Below are positions 6,292-50,341 of a DNA stretch of 64,000 nucleotides, piece after piece (position 1 is the stretch's first letter; each line of letters starts with the position of its first letter). Under the pieces are notes generated by a model. That model made no database searches and had not been told where the DNA came from. It was given only the letters and a program-made list of their open reading frames with translations. The position numbers and the translations under genes are program-made. Source of the stretch: Macrostomum lignano (Eukaryota); NCBI GenBank assembly GCA_002269645.1, contig NIVC01002727.1, forward strand, positions 1 through 64,000, read 5' to 3'.

Positions 6292-7579
6292 GCCCACATC
6301 GTCACAATTCCTAAGAAGCCGGGCACCACAAGGCTTGAGGAGCATTGAGGTATCTGCCTTCAGTCCTGCGCTGCGATGCTGCTATCGCGGTTGCAGCCCG
6401 TGCTGGATCCGTACCTGCGTCCTGAGCAGAACGACTTCCGGCCCCATCGCGGCACATTGACGCAGATCCTGGCTCTTTGCCGAGTCATCTAGGAGGCGCG
6501 GACACGCCAGTCGATCCTGATTGTAATCTTCATAGATTTCAAGAAGGCATTCGACTCGGTCATCAGCTCTGTGCTCCCAAAGGTGCTCCGTGCGTACAAC
6601 GCGTGCCAGAGCATCTGATTTCCGCAATCATGGTGATGTACCGCCTATCGGACTTCTTTGAGACATCCTCCGGGGTGCTTCAAGGAGATACGCTTGCGCC
6701 GTTTCTGTTCGTTCTGGTGCTTGACTGGGTGCTGAAGACCGCTATTCCTACCTACGACCACGGCTTTCTGTTGCGGCAGCGCGTGGGTCGACGTAAACCG
6801 GAGAGACGGCTCAGCGTGCTTGGCTACGCCAACGATCTCGCACTGTCGTCTTCAACTGTCGAGGCTGCCCAGCGACAGCTGGAAAAGCTAGTTGCTGTTG
6901 CGGCGAGTGTCGGGCTAGTTGCCAACACGCAGAAAATCGTCGTGCTCTGCGTGCCGGACGACATCGAGGCTGCGATTTTGTGCCGAGGCGCTGATAGAGA
7001 GACAGCAGAGCTTCCGCGTTGTCAGCAGTTCGTCTACCTCGGCGGTCTGGTTCCCGGTGTCCGCGAGGATTTGCGGTGTCGCCGCGGGCTTGCCTGGGCT
7101 CCTTTCGTTCTGTGAGGGCAGTCCTGCAGTCTGAGGCCTTACATGACCGCCAGAGGGCGGCGTTGTTCCAGGCAGTGATCGAGACCGTCCTGCTGTACGA
7201 CGCCGAGACCTGGACGCTGACGGAGCCACTCTAGCAACAAGTTGACGCGGCGCATGCTGGCCTGCTGCGCGCCGCCTTCAAGATCGGCTACGAGCAAGTG
7301 ACCAACGCGGCTTTGTATCGCCGCGCCGGCCTCGTCCGTCCAAGCGATGTGTTCCGCCGTCGGCGACTCCAGCTGGCAGGCCACATCATCCGCGCCGAGT
7401 AGTACTGCCCACAACCGGTGCAGAAGGTGCTGCTGCTAACGCTGCAGACACCCTACTGGAAGGGGCAGGCCCGCACTCGCCGTTTCGTCGACTGCCTGCT
7501 GGCTGCAGACGCCGGCGCCCCGGATATGGCCGGCGGCGTGGCGTTCATTCGCGACCTGACCTTGAGGCGCGCCTTGTGA
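6292..7579 (+). pseudogene. 5'-truncated, decayed non-LTR retrotransposon reverse transcriptase (RTE-like LINE)
   Basis: Translates across stops and frameshifts as HIVTIPKK...LDPYLRPEQNDFRPHRG...IFIDFKKAFDSV...GVLQGDTLAPFLFVLVLDWVL...LGYANDLAL (YADD site reads YAND)...FVYLG...FQAVIETVLLYDAETWTLT. Confidence 0.9.
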
Positions 7580-8523: not shown

Positions 8524-9037
8524 TTATTAGTGTCTGACTTACAGTGTAGTGTCTCTTATTAGTGTCTGACTTACAGTGTAGTGTCTCTTATTAGTGTCTG
8601 ACTTACAGTGTAGTGTCTCTTATTCTGACTTAGAGTGTCGTGTCTCTTACTAGTGTCTGACTTACAGTGTAGGGTCTCTTATTAGTGTCTGACTTACAGT
8701 GTAGTGTCTCTTATTAGTGTCTGACTTACAGTGTAGTGTCTCTTATTAGTGTCTGACTTACAGTGTAGTGTCTCTTATTAGTGTCTGACTTACAGTGTAG
8801 TGTCTCTTATTAGTGTCTGACTTACAGTGTAGTGTCTCTTATTAGTGTCTGACTTACAGTGTAGTGTCTCTTATTAGTGTCTGACTTACAGTGTAGTGTC
8901 TCTTATTAGTGTCTGACTTACAGTGTAGTGTCTCTTATTAGTGTCTGACTTACAGTGTAGTGTCTCTTATTAGTGTCTGACTTACAGTGTAGTGTCTCTT
9001 ATTAGTGTCTGACTTACAGTGTAGTGTCTCTGATTAG
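8524..9037. repeat. 32-bp minisatellite, about 16 copies
   Basis: Unit ATTAGTGTCTGACTTACAGTGTAGTGTCTCTT, near-perfect copies. Confidence 0.95.
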
Positions 9038-9830
9038 TTTGGATTTCCTATTCGATTTTTTTATACGAGCTAAATGATAGTGTATATGGGTAATGAAATT
9101 ATGCAAATGTCGTTCGAGTGCCATGCAGTGCCGTACTCAGCGCTGACTGATTAATACCCACGAAAAAGCGCAGCCAGCAGATCAATAACAGCACTCGTTG
9201 ACCTCATCATGTTTTAGTGCTTTAGCCTGGCTTGTAAAATCTGTTTACTTGCTCACAAGTAGCAACAGCTGGACTTCTTGAGCACCTGTTCACTTCCTTA
9301 TTTCTACAGTAGACACACAATGACAATAGGCTTTAAGGCTGGACGTTTAATAACAGCGCTGAAGAAAACTTGCCTAGTTAACAAATATTAATTAGGGGTT
9401 TTGTTTGTTCATATTTTACTATTGAAACTGGTCATACGATCGTACTTGGTGTACTTGATAAAATCTCAAACAGGAAGCATCTCTTACGGAATCGCTGGCA
9501 CCGAATAGTTTTGTCCTATAATAAATTCGGATTTCACCAATTCGCGGAATCAACGAGCCGTGATGGATCGCTTTGTACCAATAAATCCGGCAATTTCCAG
9601 TGAGTTGCCGGATCAGCAGTCATCGGTATCGGGATCAGTTGCTGAGGAGCGGGCCTCCTGTACCCTCTACTCAGATCTTATCCTATCGCATTGCATTTCT
9701 CGCAACTTAATTTTCACTATTCCTATGGAGCCCGCCCTGATCCGCAAACCGGTTCCCCAATGTCTATCCGCAAATCTCTGTTTAGCATTTGGTCACTTGC
9801 GCCAACAAGTCCAACTGTTTACTCAGTGGC

Positions 9831-10854
9831 TCATTGCCCAGCGTCGAAGCAGTTATTCACCAGATACGTCATCACCGCGTCCGAGAAGAGCCGCGACTGT
9901 CGCAGCCGGTTGAGCATCTTCTCCTGCTCGGAGCCGTCGGTCAGGAACACGATCTTGTCCTGCAGGCCGGTGAGGTACAGCAGCGGCACCAGAAGCCGGC
10001 GCAGCAGGTAGGGCAGCCGGTAGAGCACGGCGTACGCAATCTGGCAGGGCAGCAGTTTGAGCACCTCGGCAACCGAGCTCACGGTGTCCACCGTGCAGTG
10101 ACTTGGGTTCAGGTGGGCGCAGTCGAAGAACAGACAGACGCCGTGCTGAGTTTTCGGCAAATATCTGGAGAAGATTGGGTGCCGAAAATTTCGGCGTGCA
10201 ACTAATTGGCTTTAAACCTGATTTGAAAAGTACATAATTCGCTCGCGGTAAAATCACTAAAATCGGATTTCTAAATTTAGCAGTTCATACTCGATACAAA
10301 CGATGATGAAGTGGAACAGGTGCGCCAGGTAGGCGGGCAGATCGGCCACGGCGAGTCCCATGGAGCTGCGCAGGCTGAAGGACGAGAAAATAACCGGCCG
10401 GCCCAGAGTGTCCAACCCGGCCATCTCGATGAGGTGGAAGCCCGGCTTGTGCAAGCAGACGGTGCAGACCTCGATGTTGCCCAGCCCGAGCCGTCGGTAG
10501 GTCCGGCGGATGGCCTCGAGCCGCTCCAGCGCCGTAGCGGGCTGGCAATCGGCGTCAGCGATGGCCCAGGCTTCCAGATCTCCGTTCACCAAGAACTTGC
10601 GCTCTCGCTCGCTGCACTTTTCATCTCGGCGTTTGAACAGGCCGACAAGACTCGATTGCAGGGTGAAGGCGCGGGCGAAGTTCCGGCCGCAGCAGGTGCA
10701 GCAGACCGTGTCCGTGATCAGTTCTTTGTTTGGCTCCGTCAGGCGCTTGACCAGCTCCCTGTCAAAGATGTGCAGCAGTTCGGAGGCGCCGCGCGACACC
10801 ACGTGAACTTGAGGATGCAGCTGCGGTTGCTGCTGCAGCTGCTGTTTTAAGCTC

Positions 10855-10886
<32 letters not shown>

Positions 10887-11033
10887 CTGTTGCAGCTGCT
10901 TCAAAGCAATCGACGACTTCAAAAAATTGTGAGAGTCTTGAACTGTCAGCTGATCTGGTGACTGGTCAGCTGCCTCATCATCTTCCTTACTATTATCGTC
11001 TGAGATGTTCTCGAAAAGATATCCGTCTGACAT
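9831..11033 (-). CDS. CRAL-TRIO/Sec14-like lipid-binding-domain protein with N-terminal polyQ; exons 11033-10291 and 10164-9831, about 358 aa
   Basis: A GT-AG intron (10290-10165) joins the two ORFs in frame (CIE/YLPKTQHGVCLFFDC). The motifs GLDTLGRPVIF, GVCLFFDC, LP-x-x-IAYAVLYRLP and KIVFL follow the CRAL-TRIO pattern. CAG/CAA run at about 10830-10900. Exons are GC-rich. Confidence 0.65.
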
Positions 11034-12930
11034 CTTGACTTGGTTACTTATTGTCTTTGTCGGTGTGGTGCTCTAGCTGAATCATATATTGAGAACGACG
11101 TCTCTCTTCTCGGAGGGATATTCGGTTCGGCCCATAGACATGCAGCGAAGGCTGAAGGATGCGCCAAATATTTAGACAGAGAATTTTTCTGAACAGGTGC
11201 ATGCACAGCTACTTTGCTGGGTCGAAAAGCGGATATGATCCTAATTATGATTGATTGATGGCCCATAGTTTGCACCGGAAGAATTTTATTTATTCTACCC
11301 TCTGTAGACTGTTGGCAGGACTCGATGAACGCTCCCGACTTCACGTCATGCCCCTCTGACTGCCGGATCATGCAAAGCAAACTCAATCGGACGCGCTTCA
11401 AGGAGCTCTACCATTTCACTCATACAGTAAAAGACCGGATGTCGGCATCGTCTTTGATGTCTTAATCTCCTACGAGGACTCCCGACCATGCTTGGTAGGT
11501 GCAGCCAGCTTTGTCAGTAGGAATCACATCTTGCAGCTCCTCGGCAGGGTTGAAAGAGTTTTGAATTAGAATTTTCAAGTCCTCTCAACTACTCGAAACT
11601 TTGGCTTTCTGAACCTTTTCGATTCAGTGAGCCTTGTGAAATTGAGTCTGGACCTCGATGCCAATCTCCATGCTCTGAGTAATGTCAAAGTACGAGTAGC
11701 CACCCTGTTGTAGATGCTAATAGATGTAGAATTCCCCTTAAGCCTTGGAATCCCAGAATTCCCTCTTAAGCTTGTGAAGCTTAAAAACATCTATTGGTTT
11801 CTTTACTTTATACAGCGGATTTAAAGTGTTTGAGACTGTGCTCAAAAACACTAACGGAGTTTGAAGGAAAGATGCGTGAGTTTTATTGATGCCGTGCAGT
11901 GTCTACGACTATACAAGTCTTAAGAACTACAGATGGGTTTTATAGACAAGTACTATAGAAATGCACTTCACAGGCACGATACTTCACAAACATGATACTT
12001 AACAAACACAATACTCACAGACACGATATTCACTTCACAGGCACCACAAACTTCACAAGCGGGATACTTCACAAACGCGATACTTCACAGGCGGGACACT
12101 TCACAAGCAATCATGTGAGCTCAGGCATAAAAAAAGCTCTGTATCAATTGGGCTTATTTGGAATTGGAAATCCGAAAGGCTGACAATCAGCCGTGCCCGC
12201 GCACTTTAAAATCAATAAAATACATGCTTTCTAGTAAGCAGTGCTTTTATTCTTACGTTACTCAACTCAAGTCACCCGCTGCCTGTCAGCCAGCCAGCCA
12301 GTCAAGAGGTCTTTCTGGAGCAGTACTGGTGCTTTCGCAGGGGACGCAATCTTCTAAGACTGCATGTGAAGAAAGGCTGTGTACACTAGTGTGTTTAGTT
12401 CAGTCTTATGGCACCGATGCTAGACACTGCATGGCATCATTCCTGAAATTTTGAATCACCCACGTTGCGGCAAAGATAACGCTGTGCATAGTGATGCGAG
12501 GCAGTGCCTTTCCGTGACAAAGTGATTTGCAGTTTTGGTAGCGAGTTTCTATTAGGCTTAATAGTGCATTTAATTATAATAACCTAATCCGCTGCACAGT
12601 GCCAGTGACCTGAAAAGTTTCTGCCGATACTCAGGGATTGCTACCACAGTTTGTGCAGTTTAGCAGAGCTAAAGTAATCAAAGTGCTCAAAGAAACCGCA
12701 AAAATCCAATTCGCTTATATATAAGATTGCTCAACTCAATTTCCATAATGGGTCATGCGTAGCCTTCTCCGAACTTTGCTGTGTGCTCGGTGCATCAAAT
12801 CAGTCAAAAAACAATCGCAGGATGTGCGGAAGCAGCAATAAAGAGACCCTCTTCGAACACCAGCCAAGGACCCCTAGAAGTCACCGTTAATTCTAGCGGT
12901 CCTTGACACCAGAGTTACAAGTAGGCGAAA

Positions 12931-14733
12931 GGGGATGTCAACTTAAGCACCAGAATGGAGCCCGAAGTTCAGCTCCGGACCAAACCGACTGCAATCGATA
13001 ACTTGTCGGCCCAGACGACTAGAATCGCCGAGACATCCCATCCGGCTCCCTTCCTTGGGGTCCCAGGGGATAAAGGGGATAAAATGGGGATCTCATGTCA
13101 ACTTAAGGCTCTGGAATGGAGCCCGAAGTTCAGCTCCGGACCAAACCGACTGCAATCGATAACTTGTCGGCCCAGACGACTAGAATCGCCGAGACATCCC
13201 ATCCGGCTCCCTTCCTTGGGGTCCCAGGGGATAAAGGGGATAAAATGGGGATCTCATGTCAACTTAAGGCTCTGGAATGGAGCCCGAAGTTCAGCTCCGG
13301 ACCAAACCGACTGCAATCGATAACTTGTCGGCCCAGACGACTAGAATCGCCGAGACATCCCATCCGGCTCCCTTCCTTGGGGTCCCAGGGGATAAAGGGG
13401 ATAAAATGGGGATCTCATGTCAACTTAAGGCTCTGGAATGGAGCCCGAAGTTCAGCTCCGGACCAAACCGACTGCAATCGATAACTTGTCGGCCCAGACG
13501 ACTAGAATCGCCGAGACATCCCATCCGGCTCCCTTCCTTGGGGTCCCAGGGGATAAAGGGGATAAAATGGGGATCTCGTGTCAACTTAAGGCTCTGGAAT
13601 GGTGCCCGAAGTTCAGCTCCGGACCAAACCGACTGCAATCGATAACTTGTCGGCCCAGACGACTAGAATCGCCGAGACATCCCATCCGGCTCCCTTCCTT
13701 GGGGTCCCAGGGGATAAAGGGGATAAAATGGGGATCTCATGTCAACTTAAGGCTCTGGAATGGAGCCCGAAGTTCAGCTCCGGACCAAACCGATTGCAAT
13801 CGATAACTTGTCGGCCCAGACGAGTAGAATCGCCGAGACATCCCATCCGGCTCCCTTCCTTGGGGTCCCAGGGGATAAAGGGGATAAAATGGGGATCTCA
13901 TGTCAACTTAAGGCTCTGGAATGGAGCCCGAAGTTCAGCTCCGGACCAAACCGATTGCAATCGATAACTTGTCGGCCCAGACGACTAGAATCGCCGAGAC
14001 ATCCCATCCGGCTCCCTTCCTTGGGGTCCCAGGGGATAAAGGGGATAAAATGGGGATCTCGTGTCAACTTAAGGCTCTGGAATGGAGCCCGAAGTTCAGC
14101 TCCGGACCAAACCGACTGCAATCGATAACTTGTCGGCCCAGACGACTAGAATCGCCGAGACATCCCATCCGGCTCCCTTCCTTGGGGTCCCAGGGGATAA
14201 AGGGGATAAAATGGGGATCTCATGTCAACTTAAGGCTCTGGAATGGAGCCCGAAGTTCAGCTCCGGACCAAACCGATTGCAATCGATAACTTGTCGGCCC
14301 AGACGACTAGAATCGCCGAGACATCCCATCCGGCTCCCTTCCTTGGGGTCCCAGGGGATAAAGGGGATAAAATGGGGATCTCATGTCAACTTAAGGCTCT
14401 GGAATGGAGCCCGAAGTTCAGCTCCGGACCAAACCGACTGCAATCGATAACTTGTCGGCCCAGACGACTAGAATCGCCGAGACATCCCATCCGGCTCCCT
14501 TCCTTGGGGTCCCAGGGGATAAAGGGGATAAAATGGGGATCTCATGTCAACTTAAGGCTCTGGAATGGAGCCCGAAGTTCAGCTCCGGACCAAACCGATT
14601 GCAATCGATAACTTGTCGGCCCAGACGACTAGAATCGCCGAGACATCCCATCCGGTTTCAAGTGACGAAGCTCTATTCTATTCGAATATCGCATTAGCGG
14701 GTGTATTTTATTTTAGCTATTATATATTGTTTG
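12931..14733 (+). repeat. Left inverted arm: 24-bp tip, 10 full plus 1 partial 161-bp units, ~78-bp unique inner segment
   Basis: Unit starts recur every 161 bp (12955, 13116 ... 14565). The unique segment TTTCAAGTGACGAAGCTC...AGCTATTATA spans 14656-14733. Confidence 0.95.
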
Positions 14734-14969
14734 CATTGTAATATTTCCGTCGTTTAATTTTTCCGGATTTTTGAGAATGTTTTCGCGGTTTTGATTTGAC
14801 CACTTTAGGCGAGAGATTTTTGATACTGTGCGTCAAGTATTTGTAGCATTAGTTTAAGTGATATATTTTAAGTGATATATTAATGAAGTTAAGGTTTTGG
14901 TCAGTTTTTCTTACTTAGTTTTATGACAGGTGCAGATTTGTTGCAGATTGCGTTTTATACTTGCTAGTA

Positions 14970-17906
14970 ATGTCCGATTTTACTTGCTCTCAATGTGGTC
15001 ATCAATTCAGCAAAGCAGCCAATTTGAACCGACATCTCGAAACGACTAGATGTGGTCGCTGCTCATCTGAATCGTCTGGAGCCTTCGCGCCTCCGAGAAA
15101 CGCACGAGAGGCGCTTCAGTTTCTTGCGGTCGGTGGTAAGTATGTGAAAGTTTTTTTGAACCCAAACCTTTTTCCACGAACCGCAAATGAGAAGGAGTTC
15201 AAACGTATTTGCGGTCTTAGCTATAGTGATTTCGATAGCTTCTCAGAAATGTTACCAGAAGTATCTCGCCTTCGTATTTTGACAAAGCCATCTCGAATAT
15301 TTTTGTACCTGAAGAAGCTTCGCCAAGGTTGCAGCTTTCAATCATTAGCTTTCGATTTCAACATTTCTGCCCAAAGAGCATGCGACATTTTTTGGGAGAT
15401 TGCCAAGGAGCAGTACCTACGGGATCCATATCAACCGAGGTCGATAGCGTCGACTCCGATTCAGACTCTGCTTGAGGAAAATGTAGTACGCGATCAATTT
15501 ATTCTCGGTGTATTTCACACACTACTCAAAGGCAAGAAGCTTGTTCTTCTAGTGGGTGATCATACTTACTTTTATCTCCCTAAGAGCAGCTCACACCACA
15601 CGCAAATTCGAACTTACTTTTCCGGCAAGAAAATGAATGTGAACAAAAAAATGGCGGTTGTCAACAGTAGAGGAAAAATTATCTACACCGCTCCCCTTAC
15701 CGCCGCTATCTCGCCAACAATGGGCGATGGGAATTTGACTGCAATGCAAGTTGACATGGAGGCTGAAGGACTAATAGAGCCCACTTTGTTGCGCATTCTG
15801 TGCTCTGTACAGAAAGATTATCACGTTATTGGCATTTTCGACAAAGGTTACAGCCACCAACTTTGTTCACCAACTTCGGTTAACTTCCGCGACTTTATAG
15901 AGACTAATAGTAAAGGCTGCACGACGCTTCTATTTCCGACCAGTCCAGGTGACCGAGTTCTAAACGAGCAGTTTGAATTTGTAAATAATGAGGCTCCTGT
16001 TGGTGACCGATCAATACCAGGAAAGCTTACATCAATCGAAGCAAATACAAGTCGCTGCGCTACGCTTTTCCGTTATCTCGTAGAATGTAGCTTTGCTGCA
16101 ATCAAGCAGGACAAATGCATAAATGAGCGACAGGAGCCGTACCAATGGCTACATGCCCCAGAGTTTACCGAACGCAGCCGGCTCGATGTTGTTATTGAAA
16201 ACTCCATGGCAAAATTCAACCGTTCGCATCCAGGATTTCAAGCTACAAGGAGTCTGCCGCCGTCATGGTCAGATTGCTCCATGTTCGAATACGGACGGAA
16301 CTTTGCTAAACGTCTTTTCATTGCGAATGAGCTAGACGAAATTGAGCAACTTGAGTACAATTGCGATTTGACTCGAATACCAACGAGTTCTACCCGAAAA
16401 TGGACAGCAGTGGATCCCCTGGACCCTGAAAGTTCAGGGTTCCCCAGCGTTGACGAAAGAAATCTGGAAGAGCTTAGCATCGGCCCATACCACGTTCTTC
16501 AGTCAAAACGCTACATCGAAAACGTCAGAGTTCATGAGGTGCTCAGTAGCTACGCTGGAGACTCGTGGCGCGATTTCGAATTGTTGATTTCTGAACTGCC
16601 AAGCCATTTAAAATGCTGGAAGTTTCATCAGCGAGCGCCACCAAAGGGGTGGAGCAGTAAGTTTGGAGAATGGAGGCCATCTTGGATATATTTAGCCGTT
16701 CTTCATTCCCGTCATCGGTCAAAAACTTACCGAGTTGTCCTTCGTATTTGCGAAACTGCAAGTGGTAACCGATTCGGATTTCGTGACTCGGGGCTGCTGC
16801 GTCTGCAAGGCTACTTTTCATCCTCAAAGGCCGGAAGCAGGACAGCAGGGTGTGACAGTCATGTTATGGCTGTGGTTAGAATGCTAGGCTGTTATGCATA
16901 TCACCCCGAAAGCTACAACATGTGCGGCAGCAGCTTCCGATTTATTGACAGTGCTTTGCCAAAAGCACTGATTGCCAATCTTTACAATGATCAATCTGGT
17001 GGTCATCCAGCTCCAAATGCACCTCGCAGAGACAGTGCTGAATCGCAGCAAGATGAACAGAGGCACAGTTCAAATGCTACTGGTTCATTGAATTCGCCGA
17101 AGAAGTTATTTGGGTTGCCAAATAATGGCCTGCAGTGCTACGCAAATGCAGCAGTGCAATTGTTTCTCTGCCTGCATTCTAATGGATGCATTTTAAAAGA
17201 GACTAGCAACGACCAAGTCCATCGAGAGCTGCTTCGTCTTCTGACGGAGATGCAACAGCGGTCTGCAACAGTCACTCCACTGTTAACGGCAGTTCGGTTG
17301 CAACATCCAGATTCATTTCAAACAAATCAGCACCATTGCGTCAACGAATTTGTTCAAACGCTTCTAATACATCTGGAATTTCTGTCATCAGATGCTTTCA
17401 CAGAATTTTCACTCATTCAAACTTGTCGGGATTGCCAGCGCACAAGTGCTGAAGTTCCTGTTGGCACAATCGATAACAGAGTGATTTGCATTCCTCTCTG
17501 TCAATTTGAGCGCTCAATTGTCAGTTTAGACAAAATCTTCTGCGCTTTTGTCGCTCCTCAGGTAGTGAAATGTTCGGACGCCAATTGCCTGGGCGATTGT
17601 AATCAAGAGATCGTAGTAACACCTGGAAAGTTTACCCTGATATATCTTGATCGTGCTAGTATGGATGGCCACCTTAAGCTTCAAACTCCTGTAAGCTTTT
17701 CTTCAAGGTCAGGGGGTGTTTCTACACTTGGTAAGCCAGTGGCCACAATATCACACCATGGAAACCGACTGAAATCGGGACATTTCACAGCAAGCGTACT
17801 GAGCTGTGTGTGGACGAGAATTGACGACATGAAAGTTACGTCAGACTATAACCCGTTCGTACGTGAGCCTGAGTGCATCGTGCTCGTTGCACTTTTAAAC
17901 TCGTAA
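14970..17906 (+). CDS. Transposase-deubiquitinase fusion: C2H2 finger, HTH, DDE (DDE_Tnp_4-like), degenerate SWIM, USP/peptidase C19 domain; about 978 aa, intronless
   Basis: C2H2 finger CSQCGHQFSKAANLNRHLE. HTH-like FKRICGLS...LYLKKLRQGCSFQSLAFDFNIS. DDE motifs VGDHTY, FDKGY and RYLVECSF (preceded by EANTSR). SWIM-like SRH...KAGSRTAGCDSHVMAV. USP Cys box GLPNNGLQCYANAAVQ, QHCVNEF, His box ISHHGNRLKSGHFTA and WTRIDDMKV. First ATG is at 14970; the ORF track starts at TTG 14961. Confidence 0.88.
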   Translation: MSDFTCSQCGHQFSKAANLNRHLETTRCGRCSSESSGAFAPPRNAREALQFLAVGGKYVKVFLNPNLFPRTANEKEFKRICGLSYSDFDSFSEMLPEVSRLRILTKPSRIFLYLKKLRQGCSFQSLAFDFNISAQRACDIFWEIAKEQYLRDPYQPRSIASTPIQTLLEENVVRDQFILGVFHTLLKGKKLVLLVGDHTYFYLPKSSSHHTQIRTYFSGKKMNVNKKMAVVNSRGKIIYTAPLTAAISPTMGDGNLTAMQVDMEAEGLIEPTLLRILCSVQKDYHVIGIFDKGYSHQLCSPTSVNFRDFIETNSKGCTTLLFPTSPGDRVLNEQFEFVNNEAPVGDRSIPGKLTSIEANTSRCATLFRYLVECSFAAIKQDKCINERQEPYQWLHAPEFTERSRLDVVIENSMAKFNRSHPGFQATRSLPPSWSDCSMFEYGRNFAKRLFIANELDEIEQLEYNCDLTRIPTSSTRKWTAVDPLDPESSGFPSVDERNLEELSIGPYHVLQSKRYIENVRVHEVLSSYAGDSWRDFELLISELPSHLKCWKFHQRAPPKGWSSKFGEWRPSWIYLAVLHSRHRSKTYRVVLRICETASGNRFGFRDSGLLRLQGYFSSSKAGSRTAGCDSHVMAVVRMLGCYAYHPESYNMCGSSFRFIDSALPKALIANLYNDQSGGHPAPNAPRRDSAESQQDEQRHSSNATGSLNSPKKLFGLPNNGLQCYANAAVQLFLCLHSNGCILKETSNDQVHRELLRLLTEMQQRSATVTPLLTAVRLQHPDSFQTNQHHCVNEFVQTLLIHLEFLSSDAFTEFSLIQTCRDCQRTSAEVPVGTIDNRVICIPLCQFERSIVSLDKIFCAFVAPQVVKCSDANCLGDCNQEIVVTPGKFTLIYLDRASMDGHLKLQTPVSFSSRSGGVSTLGKPVATISHHGNRLKSGHFTASVLSCVWTRIDDMKVTSDYNPFVREPECIVLVALLNS

Positions 17907-18512
17907 AAGCATTTTTAGCGAAAATACAATTGTTTTAAGCGAGTGTACTGTACGTTTTGTATTGCAGATTTTAAAGGACATGCAGATTAAGAAACAATGT
18001 CATCTCACGCATTCTTTACGTACCATAGGTTACATGTGAAGATAATTCAGACTGACATCAAATAACAAAAGCTTTGAATTAGTTGTTTCAATTTCTTTTA
18101 GACTCACAATTAACTAAAAATTGGAAGTATTTTTTACTGAAGCAAAGAACTTAAACCCAAAAACCGTTTCTTAGGACTGAGAAACTTTTGCAATTATGAT
18201 TTTACTAAGCTTTGCGTGAGAGGCGTTACTTTATTTGCTTAAAAACGTGTGCTGCTTTGCATGACATGCTTTGTTTTTATTACTTTGATAACTTGTACAG
18301 CTTTGCATGATATGCTTTGTATCCATTACGTCATAACTTGTACAGCCTTGCGTGATATTCTTTATTTTACCAATATACATGGTTTCGGTTTATCGTCAAA
18401 AGTTCTGCTTACTAATAACCAAACGAATTTACAAGTTAATTTTTTCAAACTGAGTTTCCAGATCAGCATTTTTAACAGGTTTCGATACGAGCAAATCATT
18501 TTTATTACTTAA

Positions 18513-19671
18513 CAATCAATGTATAATAGCTGAAATAAAATACACCCGCTAATGCGATATTCGAATTGAATAGAGCTTCGTCACTTGAAACCGGATGGGA
18601 TGTCTCGGCGATTCTAGTCGTCTGGGCCGACAACTTATCGATTGCAGTCGGTTTGGTCCGGAGCTGAACTTCGGGCTCCATTCCAGAGCCTTAAGTTGAC
18701 ACGAGATCCCCATTTTATCCCCTTTATCCCCTGGGACCCCAAGGAAGGGAGCCGGATGGGATGTCTCGGCGATTCTAGTCGTCTGGGCCGACAACTTATC
18801 GATTGCAGTCGGTTTGGGCCGGAGCTGAACTTCGGGCTCCATTCCAGAGCCTTAAGTTGACATGAGATCCCCATTTTATCCCCTTTATCCCCTGGGACCC
18901 CAAGGAAGGGAGCCGGATGGGATGTCTCGGCGATTCTAGTCGTCTGGGCCGACAAGTTATCGATTGCAGTCGGTTTGGTCCGGAGCTGAACTTCGGGCTC
19001 CATTCCAGAGCCTTAAGTTGACATGAGATCCCCATTTTATCCCCTTTATCCCCTGGGACCCCAAGGAAGGGAGCCGGATGGGATGTCTCGGCGATTCTAG
19101 TCGTCTGGGCCGACAAGTTATCGATTGCAGTCGGTTTGGTCCGGAGCTGAACTTCGGGCTCCATTCCAGAGCCTTAAGTTGACATGAGATCCCCATTTTA
19201 TCCCCTTTATCCCCTGGGACCCCAAGGAAGGGAGCCGGATGGGATGTCTCGGCGATTCTAGTCGTCTGGGCCGACAAGTTATCGATTGCAGTCGGTTTGG
19301 TCCGGAGCTGAACTTCGGGCTCCATTCCAGAGCCTTAAGTTGACATGAGATCCCCATTTTATCCCCTTTATCCCCTGGGACCCCAAGGAAGGGAGCCGGA
19401 TGGGATGTCTCGGCGATTCTAGTCGTCTGGGCCGACAAGTTATCGATTGCAGTCGGTTTGGTCCGGAGCTGAACTTCGGGCTCCATTCCAGAGCCTTAAG
19501 TTGACATGAGATCCCCATTTTATCCCCTTTATCCCCTGGGACCCCAAGGAAGGGAGCCGGATGGGATGTCTCGGCGATTCTAGTCGTCTGGGCCGACAAG
19601 TTATCGATTGCAGTCGGTTTGGTCCGGAGCTGAACTTCGGGCTCCATTCTGGTGCTTAAGTTGACATCCCC
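18513..19671 (-). repeat. Right inverted arm: ~78-bp unique inner segment, 6 full plus 1 partial 161-bp units, 24-bp tip
   Basis: Reverse complement of the left arm. It is 644 bp (exactly 4 x 161) shorter. Confidence 0.95.
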
Positions 19672-19746
19672 TTTAGATAGCTTAGACATGTGTGCACTGA
19701 CAGGTAGCTCGTTGCAGCCAGCTTCCAGCAGCAGTCACAGGGAAGT

Positions 19747-22763: not shown

Positions 22764-24080
22764 TCAGTCGTACAGCTCCGGCATTGCGGTCGGAGTGGTC
22801 AGCGGAGTCCGCGCCGCACTGCCGCCCGCCACCACGGCCAGGTCCAGGTCGGCCGCCCCATTGCTGACGCTGCTGATCAGCGCGTCGCCGCATCTGCCTC
22901 TGACGTCGCTGCCGCCGTCGCGCAGGTTACCCAGCCGCTGCCGCTTCTCTGCGCGACGGCAAAACTCCGGCAGAGGCAGCCGGCGCCGGAAGCAGTTCTG
23001 AACTTCGCGCTTGAACGAATCCGAGAATACGAAGAAGACAAAAAAGTTTGCCAGTGTGTCCAGCGTTATCAGCGCGTTCAAAACGGAGAAGATGAGCTGA
23101 TTCTTGACGTGGCTGTCGCTGCGGAAGCTTGGAAAGAAGTGCAGCAGGATGAAGTAGACAAAGGTAGGCAGCTCCAGTACGGTGAAGGTGGCCGCCAGGA
23201 CCAGTAGAATTCTGGTCGCCTTGCGCTTCCTGCAGCGCCCTCGGTTCTTCGCGATTGAAGACGTGGCCAACTGGTTCTGCTGGCGCCACGCGGCCCCAAC
23301 CGTCACGGCTGAGGTGGTCGAGAGCGCGTTCGATGAGACGGTGGAGTCTGATCTCCTGACGTAACCGCCAGACGCGGTTGAGGCGTCCGAAGGCTCCCGA
23401 GCGGCGCAGAGGTGCATGGCCAGAGCCACGGAGAGTACCAGCACAGCGGGCACGGGGATTCCGGTTTGCATCACGAAGAAGAACAGAATGAAGCGCTCGC
23501 ACAGCAAGGAGGCTTGCTGCTCCTGCTGAGCAGTCACATTGGCGTCAAGTATGCCAACAGGGACGTTGCAGGATTTCTCTTCGACGTGTCTCAGAACGCT
23601 GATTGCCACGGACAGGCAGAGGATGAGGCCGAAGGCCACCGACTGCCGGCGACGCGTAAGAATTTCCGGGACGTGCAGCGGGAAGAGGATTACGATGAAA
23701 CGGATCCCGGTGAGAAATGTGACCCACCAGTTGCGCAGCAGGAGGCTGGCGTTGGTCACAAGGTACTGCGCGTCAGCGAAAATCTCCAGTGAAGATGTCG
23801 AATTCCCAGCTGATCTGCTGGACCCACCAGCACCTGTGAGACCGAAGATGCTGCTCACATGCAGCACGGTGAGCGCTGCGGACGTGAGCAGCCCAGTAAC
23901 AATCAGCAGCACCATGCCCCGGGCTCCGGCTGTGGCGTCCCTCTTTCTGGCGAAGATCCACAGAGTGAAAACCAGGGACAGCAGCGCCGCCAGCGAGACG
24001 CACAGGCTCAGGATGTAGGAGGGCAGCAGCAATGACCAATAGAGCTGCTCATCCTCAGTCAAGTCGACTGTATCATTCAT
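22764..24080 (-). CDS. Rhodopsin-class (class A) 7TM GPCR, peptide-receptor-like/orphan, intronless, 438 aa
   Basis: Seven hydrophobic segments. N-terminal NDT sequon. IRFIVILFP at the end of TM3 (DRY position). KATRILLVLAATFTVLELP in TM6. ANFFVF...SFKREV in TM7/helix 8. Confidence 0.85.
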   Translation of the reverse strand: MNDTVDLTEDEQLYWSLLLPSYILSLCVSLAALLSLVFTLWIFARKRDATAGARGMVLLIVTGLLTSAALTVLHVSSIFGLTGAGGSSRSAGNSTSSLEIFADAQYLVTNASLLLRNWWVTFLTGIRFIVILFPLHVPEILTRRRQSVAFGLILCLSVAISVLRHVEEKSCNVPVGILDANVTAQQEQQASLLCERFILFFFVMQTGIPVPAVLVLSVALAMHLCAAREPSDASTASGGYVRRSDSTVSSNALSTTSAVTVGAAWRQQNQLATSSIAKNRGRCRKRKATRILLVLAATFTVLELPTFVYFILLHFFPSFRSDSHVKNQLIFSVLNALITLDTLANFFVFFVFSDSFKREVQNCFRRRLPLPEFCRRAEKRQRLGNLRDGGSDVRGRCGDALISSVSNGAADLDLAVVAGGSAARTPLTTPTAMPELYD

Positions 24081-24631
24081 GCTATCCAGGTAAATGATTC
24101 TCTCAGTGTAACTCTTGGCAGTTGGTCACTTAGTCACCGCTGATTTTAGTCTGACGTTTGCTCCGCTCAGGAAAGCTCTTTGCCAATTTTGTCCTCTCTG
24201 GATTTCGCTAGGCAAGAGCGTCATTGGATCACGCGCCCTGGCCAATCAGAAGTGGTTCGCTTGATCAGCCAAGCCAGCCAGCCTGAGAGACGACTGCATA
24301 CGGCCGTCCTTGGGACCGGGGGGGGGGCTCCAGAAAGCCAGCCAGGATTAGAATTTCAATTTTTAATTCGCCCGTCTGGGCACGCACAATTTACTGCAAG
24401 CTCGATGCCCGGCGATGACGGACGAGACACGACCGTTTGGCTGCTACCATTCGTTGATCCGTCAATCGGTAGGAGATCAAAGCGGGTCGCTTTTATCTGC
24501 TTCTGGGTCTCTGAAAGAGTTTGCCGAGATTAAATTGGTTGAGACTTCAAGCTCTCTGTTTGCAATAATCACGTACAAGAATAAAAATTACGGACCGCAT
24601 GTTTCAGGTACATGTTTACAAGCCGTGGCTT

Positions 24632-24928
24632 CCCTCTGATGCATCAGTGAGTCCTGCTGCTCTTTCCTTCCGATGCATCAGAGAGTCCCGCTGCTCTTTC
24701 CTTCCGATGCATCAGAGAGTCCCGCTGCTCTTTCCTTCCGATGCATCAGAGAGTCCCGCTGCTCTTTCCTTCCGATGCATCAGAGAGTCCCGCTGCTCTT
24801 TCCTTCCGATGCATCAGTGAGTCCTGCTGCTCTTTCCTTCCGATGCATCAGAGAGTCCCGCTGCTCTTTCCTTCCGATGCATCAGAGAGTCCCGCTGCTC
24901 TTTCCTTCCGATGCATCAGTGAGTCCCG
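24632..24928. repeat. 34-bp minisatellite, about 8.5 copies
   Basis: Unit GCTCTTTCCTTCCGATGCATCAGAGAGTCCCGCT. Confidence 0.9.
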
Positions 24929-26664
24929 CAGTGACTTCCCTCAATTGCACCACCCGAGACACTTAATTGACTGTCTTTGTGTCTGAGCTGGGAGTTAAGC
25001 GACTTTGCTTGAAGTCTGATGGATATCGACAAGGCATCGGTTTCCTTCTGCCTTGTCCTGTGGTCTGCGGCAAGTGCAAATCCCCTGAAGGCCCTCAGAC
25101 TGACTGCATGGCTGAGTACTGTGTTGCAGCGTTTTAGACTCAAGATTGAATTACCAGACGATGAGTCCGAGAGAATGAAGGAATGTAACTCTTATTCCGC
25201 TCTGCCTCTGAGGCGGAGTCTGTGAACAAGTAATGACTAATTAATTAGAGTACAGAGACGCCTAGCACTAAAGCAGACAAGAATTCTCAGTTTAGGAGCT
25301 GAAAAAATGCGTGGAAAGAATCGCTGAGCTAATGGTCCGGCCATATCCGATGTCCAAAGCATCATTTTTAGCTTTGCAAATATTGTCAAAGGTTGCTATA
25401 TTTTGATCAGCTCTTTAACTAAGCGTTTGCCGACAAGGACATCTGTCCTGACTATTCCAGATTCTGGCAAACGGCCCGGACATCGTTAATGACTTTTGCC
25501 GGACCTGAAATTTGATAAAAATAAAACACTGAACCTTGTAATGAAAGATGATTTGAATTTTGAGAATCTAAAATTTAATGCTTGTTGTTTGCTTCCGGTA
25601 TGTCGTCCCCAGCTCCCACCATCCGACTCCCTGGTGCCCCAGCTCCCATCATCGGAATCCCTGGTACCCCAGCTCCCACCATCCGACTCCCTGGTGCCCC
25701 CGGCTCTGATACGAGCTATGAAGTAGAAATCCGTTCCAAGAAACAGCTAGCAAAACAAGTCAGCTGGCCAATAGCAAAATGTTTACAAAATTTGAAGACG
25801 TTGCCACGAGCGTAGTGCCAACAGATTACGTTAATTGGTCGCCAATTACACCGACAAGCAGTCTGGAATTTTCACACCGAGCCAGTCGCAGGACAGTAAA
25901 ACTCAATTACTTTAATTGCTTTAACGAGTCCACGGGGCGATCTGAATTTTTCACAAAATCCGGAAAAGCGCTGCCTATTATGACAAATCAAGCATAGAAG
26001 AAAACACAAAACGTCGAAGCCGGCTTTGAATTGAGCACTCCGGATGGCCCGCTGCACTTCAGTCTGCAATCTGCATGCATCGCAGACTTTCATTAAATTA
26101 ATTGCTCCCGGCACTCCGATTTTCCGGGTTTGCTTTGTTAAAATGCTCGCGGGTAGAGGGGCTGGAGGCCTCAGTCTATCATCGCCAAGCTGAAAGTCGC
26201 GCCTGCTTTGCCTTATCGATCCAGGGACTGCTGCTATTTTGGACGCTGCTTTCGCATTCAATGCTCCTGCAACCCAGCATGCGCTGCTCTATCGGGGCTG
26301 CTCTGCCTCCAACTCATCCGATATGAGTCGAGCAGCTAAAATTAGCAGGTCTGAGTGCCGTTTCCGCCCCACTGCAACAGCACTAGAGAGCCCTTCTCAT
26401 CCCTTCTCATCCCTTCTCATCCCTTCTCATCTGATCGCTTAGCCGCTGTTGACCTGTTTTTTTGATCTTCACTCGCTGGCATGTTTACAGTCCAAGTATT
26501 TCGCTACTTAGCTGACCAAAGCTGATATGCTATCTCTATACCTCTCTCCTCTGTCTGCTTCCTTTTCTTGGGAATGCATAGAATTGCCCTTAGGCCTAAA
26601 GGTTAATGAAACCTGTCTGCATTAGTGGAAGCCGCAGTCCCGTCGATCATCGATGTTCATCGAT

Positions 26665-27437
26665 GCGTCTCTGATCGGCAAATGGCGCCTCTCCGCCTTC
26701 CCGCGGCTTCCCCCGTCTCTGATCGGCAACTGGCGCCTCTCCGCCTTCCCGCGGCTTCCCCCCCCCCGTCTCTGATCGGCAACTGGCGCCTCTCCGCCTT
26801 CCCGCGACTTCCCCCGTCTCTGATCGGCAACTGGCGCCTCTCCGCCTTCCCGCGACTTCCCCCGTCTCTGATCGGCAACTGGCGCCTCTCCGCCTTCCCG
26901 CGACTTCACCCGTCTCTGATCGGCAACTGGCGCCTCTCCGCCTTCCCGCGGCTTCCCCCATCTCTGATCGGCAACTGGCGCCTCTCCGCCTTCCCGCGAC
27001 TTCCCGCGGCTTCCCCCGTCTCTGATCGGCAACTGGCGCCTCTCCGCCTTCCCGCGGCTTCCCCCGTCTCTGATCGGCAACTGGCGCCTCTCCGCCTTCC
27101 CGCGGCTTTCCCCGTCTCTGATCGGCAACTGGCGCCTCTCCGCCTTCCCGCGACTTCCCGCGGCTTCCCCCGTCTCTGATCGGCAACTGGCGCCTCTCCG
27201 CCTTCCCGCGACTTCCCCCGTCTCTGATCGGCAACTGGCGCCTCTCCGCCTTCCCGCGACTTCCCCCGTCTCTGATCGGCAACTGGCGCCTCTCCGCCTT
27301 CCCGCGACTTCCCCCGTCTCTGATCGGCAACTGGCGCCTCTCCGCCTTCCCGCGACTTCACCCGTCTCTGATCGGCAACTGGCGCCTCTCCGCCTTCCCG
27401 CGGCTTCCCCCATCTCTGATCGGCAACTGGCGCCTCT
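26665..27437. repeat. ~48-bp GC-rich minisatellite, about 16 copies
   Basis: Unit CTCTGATCGGCAACTGGCGCCTCTCCGCCTTCCCGCGACTTCCCCCGT, with occasional internal 11-bp duplications. Confidence 0.92.
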
Positions 27438-28004
27438 TCCCCTCTATATACTCTCGCTGGAGCCAAATGCAATCTAAATGTTTCACTAACATGCCGAGTG
27501 GCAAAGCTCTCCATATTTCATACTTGATTTGGCTGCTGGCAGAACAGCTCAGGAAGGTCTAAAATATAATTTTTGGATGAATCCACTTTTTTGAGCTATT
27601 AATTATTCGTATTTTTGTACAATGGGACTCGTGTGCGCACCAAAAGTTGGCCTGCTTGGGGATTTTCGTGCGATTTGCAGCCACGAGGGCCAACCCGCAA
27701 TGCACAGAGAGAGTGCACATGCCTGACAGTTAGAATTGCTCCGTTATTCTCCATTTTTATGCACTCTTTCTAAGTCATTCATGGCTGCTCAATATACAGC
27801 CATTGAACTGAGGTTATCAGAGGCCTTCATAAAAATGCCACTCTGACTCAAACAGTCTGCTAAGATTTACGACTTTGGTTATTCACGAGTCTGTGGCCCC
27901 CGGCTGGATAACTGCTGGATAATTGTAAATTACTGGGTAAAATGCATGTGCAGCACAAGGAAAGGCATTAAAATTGGGCATTTGGTACCGTAGGGGAGCT
28001 AAAA

Positions 28005-29112
28005 GAAGTAGCCTAAGGTGCTGATAGAGTAGCCAAAGGTACTGAAGGAGTAGCCCAAGGTGCTGAAGGAGTAGCCTATAGTACTGAAGGAGTAGCCTAT
28101 AGTACTGAAGGAGTAGCCTATAGTACTGAAGGAGTAGCCTATAGTACTGAAGGAGTAGCCCAAGGTACTGAAGGAGAAGCCTAAGGTGCTGAAAGAGTAG
28201 CCTATAGTACTGAAGGGGTAGTCCAAGGTGCTGAAGGAGTAGCCGATAGTACTGAAGGGGTAGTCCAAGGTGCTGAAGGAGTAGCCTATAGTACTGAAGG
28301 GGTAGTCCAAGGTGCTGAAGGAGTAGCCTATAGTACTGAAGGGGTAGTCCAAGGTGCTGAAGGAGTATGGAGTAGCCTATGGTAACTGAAGGAGTAGCCT
28401 AAGGTACTTATGGAGTAGCCCAAGGTGCTGAAGGAGTAGCCTATAGTACTGATGGGGTAGTCCAAGGTGCTGAAGGAGTAGCCTATAGTACTGAAGGGGT
28501 AGTCCAAGGTGCTGAAGGAGTAGCCGATAGTACTGAAGGGGTAGTCCAAGGTGCTGAAGGAGTATGGAGTAGCCTATGGTAACTGAAGGAGTAGCCTAAG
28601 GTACTTATGGAGTAGCCTAAGGTGCTGAAGGAGTAGCCTATAGTACTGAAGGAGTAGCCCATAGTACTGAAGGAGTAGCCTAAGGTGCTGAAGGAGTAGC
28701 CGATAGTACTGAAGGGGTAGTCCAAGGTGCTGAAGGAGTATGGAGTAGCCTATGGTAACTGAAGGAGTAGCCTAAGGTACTTATGGAGTAGCCTATGGTA
28801 ACTGAAGGAGTAGCCTAAGGTACTTATGGAGTAGCCTATGGTAACTGAAGGAGTAGCCTAAGGTACTTATGGAGTAGCCTAAGGTACTTATGGAGTAGCC
28901 TAAGGTACTTATGGAGTAGCCTAAGGTACTTATGGAGTAGCCTAAGGTACTTATGGAGTAGCCTAAGGTACTTATGGAGTAGCCTATGGTAACTGAAGGA
29001 GTAGCCTAAGGTACTTATGGTGTAGCCTATGGTAACTGAATGAGTAGCCTAAGGTACTTATGGAGTAGCCTATGGTAACTGAATGAGTAGCCTAAGGTAC
29101 TTATGGAGTAGC
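28005..29112. repeat. 21-bp minisatellite with several sub-variants
   Basis: Units such as CTGAAGGAGTAGCCTATAGTA, CTGAAGGGGTAGTCCAAGGTG and CTTATGGAGTAGCCTAAGGTA. Confidence 0.92.
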
Positions 29113-31681: not shown

Positions 31682-32673
31682 ATGCATGGCAGCAAGTCTT
31701 ACTACATGGCAGCTAGTCTCACTGCATGGCAGCAGGTCGTACTGCATGGCAGCTGGTCTTACTGCATGGCAGCAGGTCTTACTGCATGGCAGCAGGTCTT
31801 ACTGCATGGCAGCAGGTCTTACTGCATGGCAGCTGGTCTTACTGCATGGCAGCAGGTCTTACTGCATGGCAGCTGGTCTCACTGCATGGCAGCAGGTCTT
31901 ACTGCATGGCAGCTGGTCTTACTGCATGGCAGCTGGTCTTACTACATGGCAGCTGGTCTCACTGCATGGCAGCTGGTCTTACTGCATGGCAGCAGGTCTT
32001 ACTGCATGGCAGCAGGTCTTACTGCATGGCAGCAGGTCTTACTGCATGGCAGCAGGTCTTACTGCATGGCAGCTGGTCTCACTGCATGGCAGCAGGTCTT
32101 ACTGCATGGCAGCAGGTCTTACTGCATGGCAGCTGGTCTTACTGCATGGCAGCAGGTCTTACTGCATGGCAGCAGGTCTTACTGCATGGCAGCAGGTCTT
32201 ACTGCATGGCAGCAGCAGGTCTTACTGCATGGCAGCTGGTCTCACTGCATGGCAGCAGGTCTTACTGCATGGCAGCTGGTCTTACTGCATGGCAGCAGGT
32301 CTTACTGCATGGCAGCAGGTCTTACTGCATGGCAGAAGGTCTTACTGCATGGCAGCAGGTCTTACTGCAGTGCAGCAGCAGGTCTTACTGCATGGCAGCT
32401 GGTCTCACTGCATGGCAGCAGGTCTTACTGCATGGCAGCTGGTCTTACTGCATGGCAGCTGGTCTTACTACATAGCAGCAGGTCTTACTGCATGGCAGCT
32501 GGTCTTACTGCATGGCAGCAGGTCTTACTGCATGGCAGCTGGTCTTACTACATGGCAGCTGGTCTTACTGCATGGCAGCAGGTCTTACTACATGGCAGCA
32601 GGTCTTACTGCATGGCAGCAGGTCTTACTACATGGCAGCAGGTCTTACTGCATGGCAGCAGGTCTTACTGCAT
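31682..32673. repeat. 20-bp minisatellite, about 49 copies
   Basis: Unit ACTGCATGGCAGC(A/T)GGTCTT. The overlapping long ORFs are repeat read-through. Confidence 0.95.
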
Positions 32674-49051: not shown

Positions 49052-49683
49052 GGCTGCTCACCGCAGCTCAGTCCGTTCAGCAGCAGCAAATTTCCCATTG
49101 GTTCAGTCATTCTAACCGCATCTTTGCTAACGATTTGGATTGCACTGCTAGTGGAATAATTTCGGTTATTTAATTTTCGCCTACAATTTTTTTCTGCTGT
49201 AAAATTCCTCTCTGATTGTGTCCAGGGTCTGCAAAGGTGTACAAATGTCCTTTGAAATGCGGTGCAAAGTTCTGGTCTAGGTCACGGATATTTTAATCAT
49301 GTCGTCAGTTACGATTTCTGTTTGTAGTAAAATTTATAAAAATAATCGTTGCTTTTAATTCTTTAAATTATGCTTACCAATGTTACCTTGAGAACGGTTT
49401 AGTAAATTTGCGCAACGTACTACTGTCAGAGCTATAATCAATCGATGAGCTATTTTGGCTATGTAAAATCTATGTTCAGTTTTTATCAATAAACTTTTAA
49501 CCTTTCTGGTGGCCGCCAACTATGGTTTGAGTTTCTCCCGTTTGTAGGCCGATGGTAAAGAGTTGGGCATTTTCCCTCTCAATTCCCGCAACGCCGTGTA
49601 CTTTTAGTTGTTGTTTGATCCTCAAATCATCAAACTGCTCCGAGTTTATGGCTTTGTCTCATCTGCCTAACTGTACCACCCTC

Positions 49684-50240: not shown

Positions 50241-50341
50241 GCTCACATAGAAGCTTCAGCTCAAGCTCAAAGCAATCAACTCATTTTTAATAACACGTAA
50301 TCTCTGGCTGCTAAGCGGTTATTGTGCTGTAATTACTGGCA

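Follow-up and report, generated by a model that had tools for sequence, protein, structure and literature searches.

Contig NIVC01002727.1 of the flatworm Macrostomum lignano (assembly GCA_002269645.1) harbours, within the 64,000 nucleotides analysed here (positions 1 to 64,000 of the forward strand, referred to below as the window), an apparently intact DNA transposon that extends from position 12931 to 19671. Two inverted arms of unequal length, built largely of 161-bp tandem units, enclose 3.76 kb of unique, non-palindromic DNA, and this central region carries a single gene whose product appears to combine a transposase related to those of the Spy group with a C-terminal deubiquitinase domain of the USP class. 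The features of the element are collected in Table 1. A preliminary description of this DNA had reported perfect inverted tips, kilobase-scale arms of near-identical 161-bp units and one uninterrupted open reading frame (ORF) of about 978 aa, and all three are confirmed at the positions listed there. The 17-nt tip GGGGATGTCAACTTAAG is found exactly twice in the window, once on each strand, where no occurrence is expected by chance, and the inverted-repeat arms delimited by the repeat finder span 12928-14743 and 18503-19674, the flanking AAA and TTT included. The ORF finder began the gene at a TTG (14961), which is an artefact of its bacterial start-codon rule, and the ATG at 14970 was taken as the start; this is the only ORF of at least 100 aa in the unique internal region, the remaining ORFs being read-throughs of the 161-bp units. 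Neither an AATAAA nor an ATTAAA signal is present in the 3' internal region, the window contains no further copy or fragment of the element, and a scan of the window against Rfam returned no RNA family.

Table 1. Features of the Macrostomum lignano transposon and its immediate flanks, in window coordinates.
Feature	Position	Strand	Basis or remark
AAA, left half of the presumed AAA/TTT host target	12928-12930	.	joined flanks read ...GTAGGCGAAA/TTTAGATAGC
Left inverted arm (1,813 bp), comprising the tip, 11 161-bp units and a unique inner stretch of the inverted repeat (~88 bp)	12931-14743	+	
Left tip GGGGATGTCAACTTAAG	12931-12947	+	the first repeat unit is a variant of 160 bp
161-bp tandem array, 10.7 copies	12935-14655	+	TRF, 98% matches
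AT-rich unique 5' leader, presumed promoter region	14744-14969	+	sequence only
Sole ORF, 978 aa plus stop, transposase-USP fusion protein	14970-17906	+	ATG 14970, TAA 17904-17906
N-terminal zinc finger of C2HC/C2H2 type, aa 6-28	14985-15053	+	Pfam zf-C2H2, below cut-off; pattern conserved in relative P0001
HTH_Tnp_4-like helix-turn-helix, aa 104-142	15279-15395	+	Pfam, below cut-off
DDE catalytic core, aa 190-380 (D197, D253, D291, R368, E372)	15537-16109	+	family alignment
C-terminal transposase module, conserved zinc-motif-like signature	16602-16904	+	alignment of relatives; pLDDT above 90
Disordered linker, aa 676-718	16995-17123	+	pLDDT below 50
Predicted USP (peptidase C19) deubiquitinase domain (Cys723, His938, Asp952/953)	17112-17903	+	Pfam UCH above cut-off, aligned boxes, Foldseek
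3' internal non-coding region	17907-18502	+	45-bp repeat, 2.5 copies, at 18254-18368
Right inverted arm (1,169 bp), comprising an inner stretch (~88 bp), 7 161-bp units and the tip	18503-19671	-	
Right 161-bp array, inverted orientation, 6.7 copies	18591-19667	-	TRF, 99% matches
Right tip GGGGATGTCAACTTAAG	19655-19671	-	identical to left tip
TTT, right half of the presumed AAA/TTT target site	19672-19674	.	

When counted in register from the tips, the two arms differ in length by exactly 4 x 161 bp, and only 7 positions differ between them across the outer 971 nt (99.3% identity), while single units show 0-3 differences from the unit consensus. Both arms end inwardly in the same unique sequence of ~88 bp. 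All internal unit junctions read GGGGATctcatGTCAACTTAAG, a pseudo-tip that corresponds to the tip carrying a 5-bp insertion, and each unit contains three occurrences of GGGGAT. The window contains 20 occurrences of the tip 8-mer GGGATGTC, all of them within the element, with one copy in each tip and one in each unit, the unit copy being oriented opposite to the tip of its own arm. Since each unit repeats the tip motif, the satellite appears to be a terminal segment that has been amplified, whereby candidate binding sites for the transposase are multiplied; extra binding sites have likewise been proposed for the repeats within the terminal inverted repeats (TIRs) of Galileo and for TIR-220 of Tetris (PMC4079207). 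The arms can be viewed as a satellite under construction from a transposon terminus within an intact element. The intact ORF, the identity of the arms and the perfect tips make recent activity plausible, but no more than that, because concerted evolution of the arms could also hold them alike.

It is very unlikely that the inverted arms or their lengths are a product of the assembly, for instance through a palindromic chimera or through collapse or expansion of an array. Near-identical 161-bp units are difficult to assemble and the counts of 11 and 7 are taken from the assembly alone, but the arms carry private substitutions and unequal numbers of units, the centre is unique and both tips pass cleanly into unique flanking DNA. 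A simple palindromic artefact was rejected on the basis of the unique centre, the arm-specific substitutions and the differing unit counts.

A further explanation to be weighed is that an immobile or domesticated transposase-USP gene lies by chance between inverted minisatellite arrays, in which case the arms would not be transposon ends. The window is indeed crowded with unrelated minisatellites (71 TRF rows), the element is present there as a single copy, and no TIRs are detectable around a relative located on a 1.6-Mb contig (L015). We nevertheless regard this explanation as unlikely, given the perfect 17-bp inverted tips with a sharp boundary at AAA/TTT, the confinement of the tip 8-mer to the element at one copy per unit, and the inner ~88-bp inverted segment common to both arms. 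In addition, the 161-bp unit accompanies a decayed transposase in two other gene models, so that the expectation of the preliminary description that arms and ORF occur together at other loci holds as far as protein data can show. One of these (P0018; UniRef A0A1I8IYQ6) is a Macrostomum lignano protein named 'DUF3480 domain-containing protein', and the other (P0011; UniParc UPI0007A1D47C) is a chimeric model of 2,393 aa. In both, the 161-bp unit is translated exactly (MEPEVQLRTKPTAIDNLSAQTTRIAETS...), and the transposase sequence that comes next shares ~55% identity with aa 344-471 of the window protein. As they are spliced gene models, junctions and flanks cannot be read from them; satellite unit and decayed transposase have been translated as exons, and the models are likely annotation artefacts derived from this transposon family. 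A 27-mer from the 161-bp unit that was scanned against metagenomes gave no match.

The element is inserted precisely between AAA and TTT (...GCG AAA/GGGGATGTC ... GACATCCCC/TTT AGA...), such that the joined flanks give AAATTT. The absence of a target site duplication (TSD), as noted in the preliminary description, is borne out by the lack of any direct repeat at the flanks in any register, whether TWA or another duplication, and the joint chance of AAA and TTT at both junctions is ~7e-4 when calculated from the trinucleotide frequencies of the window. What defines a Spy element is that it inserts between AAA and TTT and forms no TSD (Han et al. 2014, PMC4122938), and experimental integration at AAATTT has been reported for cgSpy (PMC11304231). 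All groups of the PIF/Harbinger-ISL2EU-Spy (PHIS) superfamily described besides Spy generate TSDs of 2-3 bp, namely TWA in PIF/Harbinger, AT (within A/AT/T) in ISL2EU, ANT in Pangu, CWG in NuwaI and C/TNA/G in NuwaII (PMC4482050). Other features of Spy elements are a single long ORF, an N-terminal helix-turn-helix (HTH), TIRs of 9-1,474 bp and the terminal sequence GGANNNNG (PMC4122938).

When 1.84 billion representative proteins were searched exhaustively with phmmer, 133 relatives of the window protein were obtained at E up to 0.001. Exact-protein look-ups returned no record for the window ORF or for three other family members (P0018, P0011 and P0052), word-indexed protein searches gave only 1 and 3 matches and were uninformative, and a scan of metagenomes with an alignment (A4) detected no relatives. 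In an alignment of 21 family sequences D197, D291 and E372 proved nearly invariant, as is R368, and D253, G235 and G293 are invariant, which supports the putative DDE triad of the preliminary description. The window protein shows a match to HTH_Tnp_4 (aa 104-142, E 7.7e-5; 22.7 bits, cut-off 27), and this region is helical with pLDDT above 90 in an AF2 model built on the family alignment (mean pLDDT 82.6, residues 60-660 mostly above 90, C-terminal domain folded with moderate confidence). A weak match to zf-C2H2 at aa 4-25 (E 0.0025) is likewise below the Pfam cut-off. Among 64 relatives that were scanned at E up to 0.001, DDE_Tnp_4 was detected in three and HTH_Tnp_4 in six, the DDE_Tnp_4 matches of P0006 and P0008 being above cut-off; these matches place the enzyme in the PHIS superfamily. 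No MULE, THAP, YqaJ or Myb/SANT domain was matched by Pfam in the window protein.

Within that superfamily, the element shares with PIF/Harbinger and ISL2EU the DDE fold at superfamily level and the HTH_Tnp_4 and DDE_Tnp_4 signals found in family members. PIF/Harbinger elements differ in having a TWA TSD and a second ORF of Myb/SANT type, and ISL2EU elements in having an AT TSD in A/AT/T, a THAP domain and a YqaJ ORF (PMC4482050); the window element possesses none of these, and its flanks are AAA and TTT, not AAT and ATT. Membership of both groups was rejected on these grounds.

The arms had led to the designation "foldback-type" in the preliminary description, and this stands for the shape of the arms and the tandem subrepeats of the TIRs, although it does not hold as a family assignment, given that the transposase is neither of the Mutator/FB nor of the P/Galileo type. 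Drosophila FB, Galileo (P superfamily) and Tetris likewise have long inverted arms with variable numbers of tandem repeats, in which the terminal domain is the source of the repeat or has sequence in common with it, and their arms are a potential seed of satellite DNA (PMC4079207). They encode an unrelated transposase superfamily, however, and generate TSDs (8-10 bp in Tetris), and most copies of FB and Tetris lack an ORF, in contrast to the intact ORF of the window copy. Foldback structure is reported to have evolved independently in several lineages of transposable elements (PMC4079207), and "foldback" therefore denotes a form and not a family; the long subrepeat-built TIRs seen here represent a structural grade rather than common descent. 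That the element is a classical member of Foldback (Mutator/FB) or of Galileo is extremely unlikely: a 161-bp unit sharing the sequence of the terminus, as in Tetris and Galileo, speaks for it, but the Mutator-type or P-type (THAP) transposase and the TSD of several bp that characterise those families are lacking, and the protein shows affinity to HTH_Tnp_4 and DDE_Tnp_4 and is homologous over its full length to proteins with Spy spacing. Membership was rejected in view of the PHIS-type transposase, the lack of a THAP domain and the lack of a TSD.

The relation to Spy was addressed by collecting and aligning remote matches with a hidden Markov model (HMM) of the family core. About 20 such proteins (~480-850 aa) mostly show the spacing D(77-82)D(47-53)E, of which D(79)D(47-53)E is seen most often and corresponds to the published Spy signature, D(79-80)D(44-62)E (PMC4122938). 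Two springtail proteins annotated as "DDE Tnp4 domain-containing" are among the related matches, with D(81)D(50)E in Orchesella and D(88)D(48)E in Folsomia. Profile-profile comparison (hhalign) of the window family with the Spy-spacing group gave a probability of 100% (E 6.2e-54, 491 columns), and the homology spans the protein from the HTH through a C-terminal module (aa 545-645) with the signature PSxH...CxxGxRxxGC[CD]xH, which is shared with the Spy-spacing outgroup. In a midpoint-rooted neighbour-joining tree without support values, the proteins with Spy spacing group together in a single clade, and those with long spacers lie beyond it on several deep branches. The clade of the window protein, which itself has D(93)D(80)E, is characterised by D(92-94)D(74-102)E; only P0078 departs from this pattern, having D(86)D(78)E.

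One Spy-spacing protein (P0060, 597 aa) is encoded on a contig (L016) on which the gene is bracketed by an imperfect 15-bp TIR, AAA/TAGATTCAGAAAAAC...GTTTTTTGGTATCTA/TTT. Copies of the motif lie at 848-865, 1014-1029 and 3194-3211 of this contig, a third, inverted copy being placed 170 bp inside the left end, and this additional copy may be a subterminal repeat or a nested miniature inverted-repeat transposable element. The AAA/TTT bracket is suggestive only as support for the relation to Spy.

Thus the window element resembles Spy in its insertion between AAA and TTT without a TSD, in its single long transposase ORF with no second ORF, in the N-terminal HTH (below the Pfam cut-off) that precedes a DDE core with R(3)E, in TIRs that begin with GG and that in Spy too can reach the kilobase range, and in the C-terminal module, which is also present in Spy-spacing proteins. 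This agreement goes against the earlier statement that the combination matches no described family; the preliminary description named Spy solely for comparison and did not remark on the AAA/TTT context. We consider it likely that the element is a cut-and-paste transposon of the PHIS superfamily resident in the Macrostomum genome, structurally intact and probably autonomous, with Spy-type insertion. Spy would be the closest known kind, and the element is best placed in a putative sister clade to Spy, not as a plain member, because its D-D-E spacing and its tip consensus depart from those published. Three departures from described Spy elements are apparent, namely a long-spacer DDE core, satellite-built arms and a fused USP. 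The spacing is D(93)D(80)E compared with D(79-80)D(44-62)E, the tip reads GGGGATGT compared with GGANNNNG, the TIRs are composed of 161-bp tandem units compared with long Spy TIRs without apparent subrepeat structure, and the protein has 978 aa and a C-terminal USP compared with ~500-700 aa in intact Spy transposases. The flatworm host also belongs to a phylum that is absent from the published Spy host lists with which it was compared.

Several observations weigh against this assignment. The spacing lies outside the published Spy range, and the tip matches the Spy consensus in the leading GG alone. Only one copy is visible, without an empty site, so that AAA and TTT could formally be the final bases of the TIR; the inverted repeat formally extends through them because they are complementary, and AAAGGGGAT is also found within every 161-bp unit. 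The first Cys of the C-terminal motif (xC(K)xGxRxxGC[CD]xH; window 16845-16865, aa 626-632, together with aa 613-620 upstream), which is present in most relatives, is Ser in the window copy, and this copy could be impaired through the change; a few other family members likewise lack this Cys. Clade placement is drawn from the spacing signature and a neighbour-joining tree that carries neither support values nor labelled Spy, ISL2EU or Harbinger references, and no convincing TIRs or flanks were recovered for any close relative (contigs L001-L015).

The ambiguity at AAA/TTT could be taken to mean that the element is related to the PHIS superfamily but does not follow the Spy mechanism, AAA and TTT being the ends of its TIRs and its insertion chemistry being its own, either TSD-less or different in another way. 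The continuation of the inverted repeat through AAA/TTT, the recurrence of AAAGGGGAT and the unusual spacing and tip would all fit such a scheme. It nevertheless appears quite improbable, since the authors of Spy met the identical ambiguity and resolved it in favour of a host AAATTT by means of empty sites (PMC4122938), the nearest homologues carry Spy spacing, and every other described PHIS group produces a TSD, for which there is no trace here in any register.

The suggestion that the element may represent a new group is upheld in part: although it is Spy-like and not categorically new, it belongs to a long-spacer clade for which no description was found in the literature searched, also when it was searched for Macrostomum transposons. 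What is new here is this deep sister clade of Spy-type transposases, a USP fusion conserved within it, and TIRs built of subrepeats. The latter are new for the Spy group because long Spy TIRs have been reported without apparent subrepeat structure (PMC4122938).

The fused USP reported in the preliminary description was recovered as a Pfam UCH match above cut-off at aa 715-958 of the window protein (E 2.6e-9; 37.5 bits, cut-off 23.9). The putative catalytic residues are intact: Cys723 is situated in GLPNNGLQCYANAAVQ (Cys box GLPNNGLQ-C723-YANAAVQ), His938 in SGHFTAS and D952/D953 in RIDDMKV, and all of these boxes align with those of relatives. A sequence search of the PDB at E up to 0.01 gave no match, and the top matches of a Foldseek search against the PDB are solely USP catalytic domains (USP1, USP36, USP46/12, USP18, USP47, USP15 and USP7; E 7e-10 to 2e-7), which points to a USP fold in the modelled protein. 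The ranking is too flat to pick one paralogue. USP1 and USP12/46 act on DNA-repair substrates.

The same arrangement is observed in relatives. Pfam detects UCH at the C-terminus of P0010 (1,048 aa), P0021 (955 aa) and P0033 (1,119 aa), and P0051 (1,639 aa) matches an HMM built from the USP regions of the family (E 4.9e-20); fragments P0007, P0014, P0070 and P0084 are of the same USP type. The four USP-fused relatives, which stem from ocean metagenomes, are 22-30% identical to the window protein and fall into at least two deep subclades of the neighbour-joining tree. Since the fusion is present in at least four relatives at this level of identity, it is an old and conserved architecture. In contrast, P0003-P0005 and P0176 are without a USP and possess instead an N-terminal C2H2 region of ~370 aa. 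Almost all of these relatives are encoded on ENA, TARA Oceans, Logan or JGI metagenome contigs.

A cysteine protease of ubiquitin or SUMO pathways, either joined to the C-terminus of a DDE transposase or encoded alongside it, is also seen in Ginger1 (OTU or Ulp1), MULEs (Ulp1) and Helitrons (OTU), although OTU and Ulp1 are other protease families than USP. These cases are listed by Bao, Kapitonov & Jurka 2010 (PMC2836005), who suggested an involvement of ubiquitin pathways in transposition and who mention alongside, in one sentence, a Trichomonas vaginalis protein that contains transposase_11 and peptidase C19, and hence an IS4/IS5-type DDE domain together with the same peptidase family. No paper joining PHIS, Spy, ISL2EU or Harbinger with a USP was found in the searchable literature. 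The Trichomonas protein is therefore the sole literature precedent, known from that one-sentence mention, which gives no element structure, and it may belong to the same clade or represent an independent fusion.

The gene organisation of relatives was inspected on their contigs. The closest full-length relative (L001, 900-2931, JGI metagenome 3300040801) is 51% identical to the window protein; it contains an in-frame stop after codon 560 and a frameshift, although homology still reaches aa 677 at the end of the contig, and it is a decaying copy from another host. Contigs L002-L007 (from TARA Oceans and other ENA entries) carry the P0033 family of transposase-USP genes with an extra upstream ORF of 454 aa (e.g. 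L002 1568-2932), which has no Pfam match. In this family a 3' tract of degenerate GGGGATT/GGGATT repeats (e.g. L003 6359-6520) recalls the GGGGAT motif of the arms. The TARA contigs are 99.2-99.9% identical to each other across samples; the left end of L002 differs from those of L003 and L004, and no right-hand boundary is reached. On L009 a 580-aa C2H2 zinc-finger ORF (202-1944) is located upstream of the transposase-USP gene, and it is a homologue of the extension that P0003-P0005 and P0008 carry fused to the N-terminus of their transposase. The DNA-binding module is therefore either fused or separate according to lineage, or it is split by an unrecognised intron. Downstream of the USP-less P0176, direct repeats at ~130-200 bp spacing occur at 3579-4008 and 4508-4940 of L011; the left end of that element lies beyond the contig, and the repeats hint that subterminal repeat arrays may be common in the clade.

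A working scheme for the element can be proposed. The N-terminal zinc finger and HTH would bind the tip motif GGGGATGTC and its repeats, and, because the motif recurs in every unit as a pseudo-tip and as an inverted 8-mer, the arms may serve as landing pads with many sites, an idea put forward earlier for Galileo and Tetris. The DDE core would excise the element at the GGGG tips and integrate it at the centre of AAATTT without staggered cuts. The arrays would have grown by duplication of the terminal ~160 bp, with unequal exchange or slippage shifting their length and giving rise to 11 units on one side and 7 on the other. The USP, carried on its flexible linker, might deubiquitinate the transposase itself or nearby chromatin or repair factors, and could in this way shield the element from ubiquitin-dependent degradation, silencing or repair signalling.

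It is possible, though we advance it tentatively and think it less probable than not, that the element belongs to a deep and undescribed sister clade of Spy, the ancestor of which gained an active USP and which persists in flatworms and marine plankton, the USP being tethered to the arm arrays, where it would strip ubiquitin and allow evasion of host control. If true, this would make the element the first transposon with a characterised effector of the USP class. Retention of the fusion across relatives of 22-30% identity suggests that removal of ubiquitin benefits the transposon, and the old idea of ubiquitin/SUMO pathways in transposition becomes testable with a single polypeptide. To our knowledge, Spy elements are the only eukaryotic cut-and-paste transposons that integrate without a TSD, and a deep relative whose catalytic spacers are longer would add to the enzymes with which this chemistry can be studied. 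The cgSpy element is under development as a gene-transfer tool. As Macrostomum lignano is a transgenesis model, an endogenous and possibly active DNA transposon is of practical interest in this organism.

The window as a whole (1-64000) is extremely dense in the unrelated minisatellites, which have periods of 16-58 bp and up to 50 copies (e.g. 8524-9038, 24630-24929, 26666-27437, 28003-29113, 31676-32680, 49671-50242, 57009-57901 and 61238-61912), and many of them yield long spurious ORFs on both strands. Upstream of the transposon, a 212-aa ORF with a reverse-transcriptase domain (6477-7115, +; RVT_1, E 2e-9) represents a retroelement fragment. An intronless ORF of 438 aa at 22764-24080 (-) matches rhodopsin-family G-protein-coupled receptors (7tm_1, E 4e-8; Srw chemoreceptor, E 5e-6) and is probably a real host gene, situated at a distance of ~3 kb from the transposon. 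The minisatellite density, the reverse-transcriptase fragment and this intronless ORF are in keeping with an animal genome such as that of Macrostomum lignano, to which the 161-bp unit translated in P0018 and P0011 also points. Host genes may further be represented by single exons, namely a 258-aa poly-Q ORF at 10257-11033 (-) with no Pfam match, a 239-aa ORF at 46871-47590 (+) with a weak C2H2 finger, and a BACK-domain fragment at 60726-61229 (+; E 2e-4).

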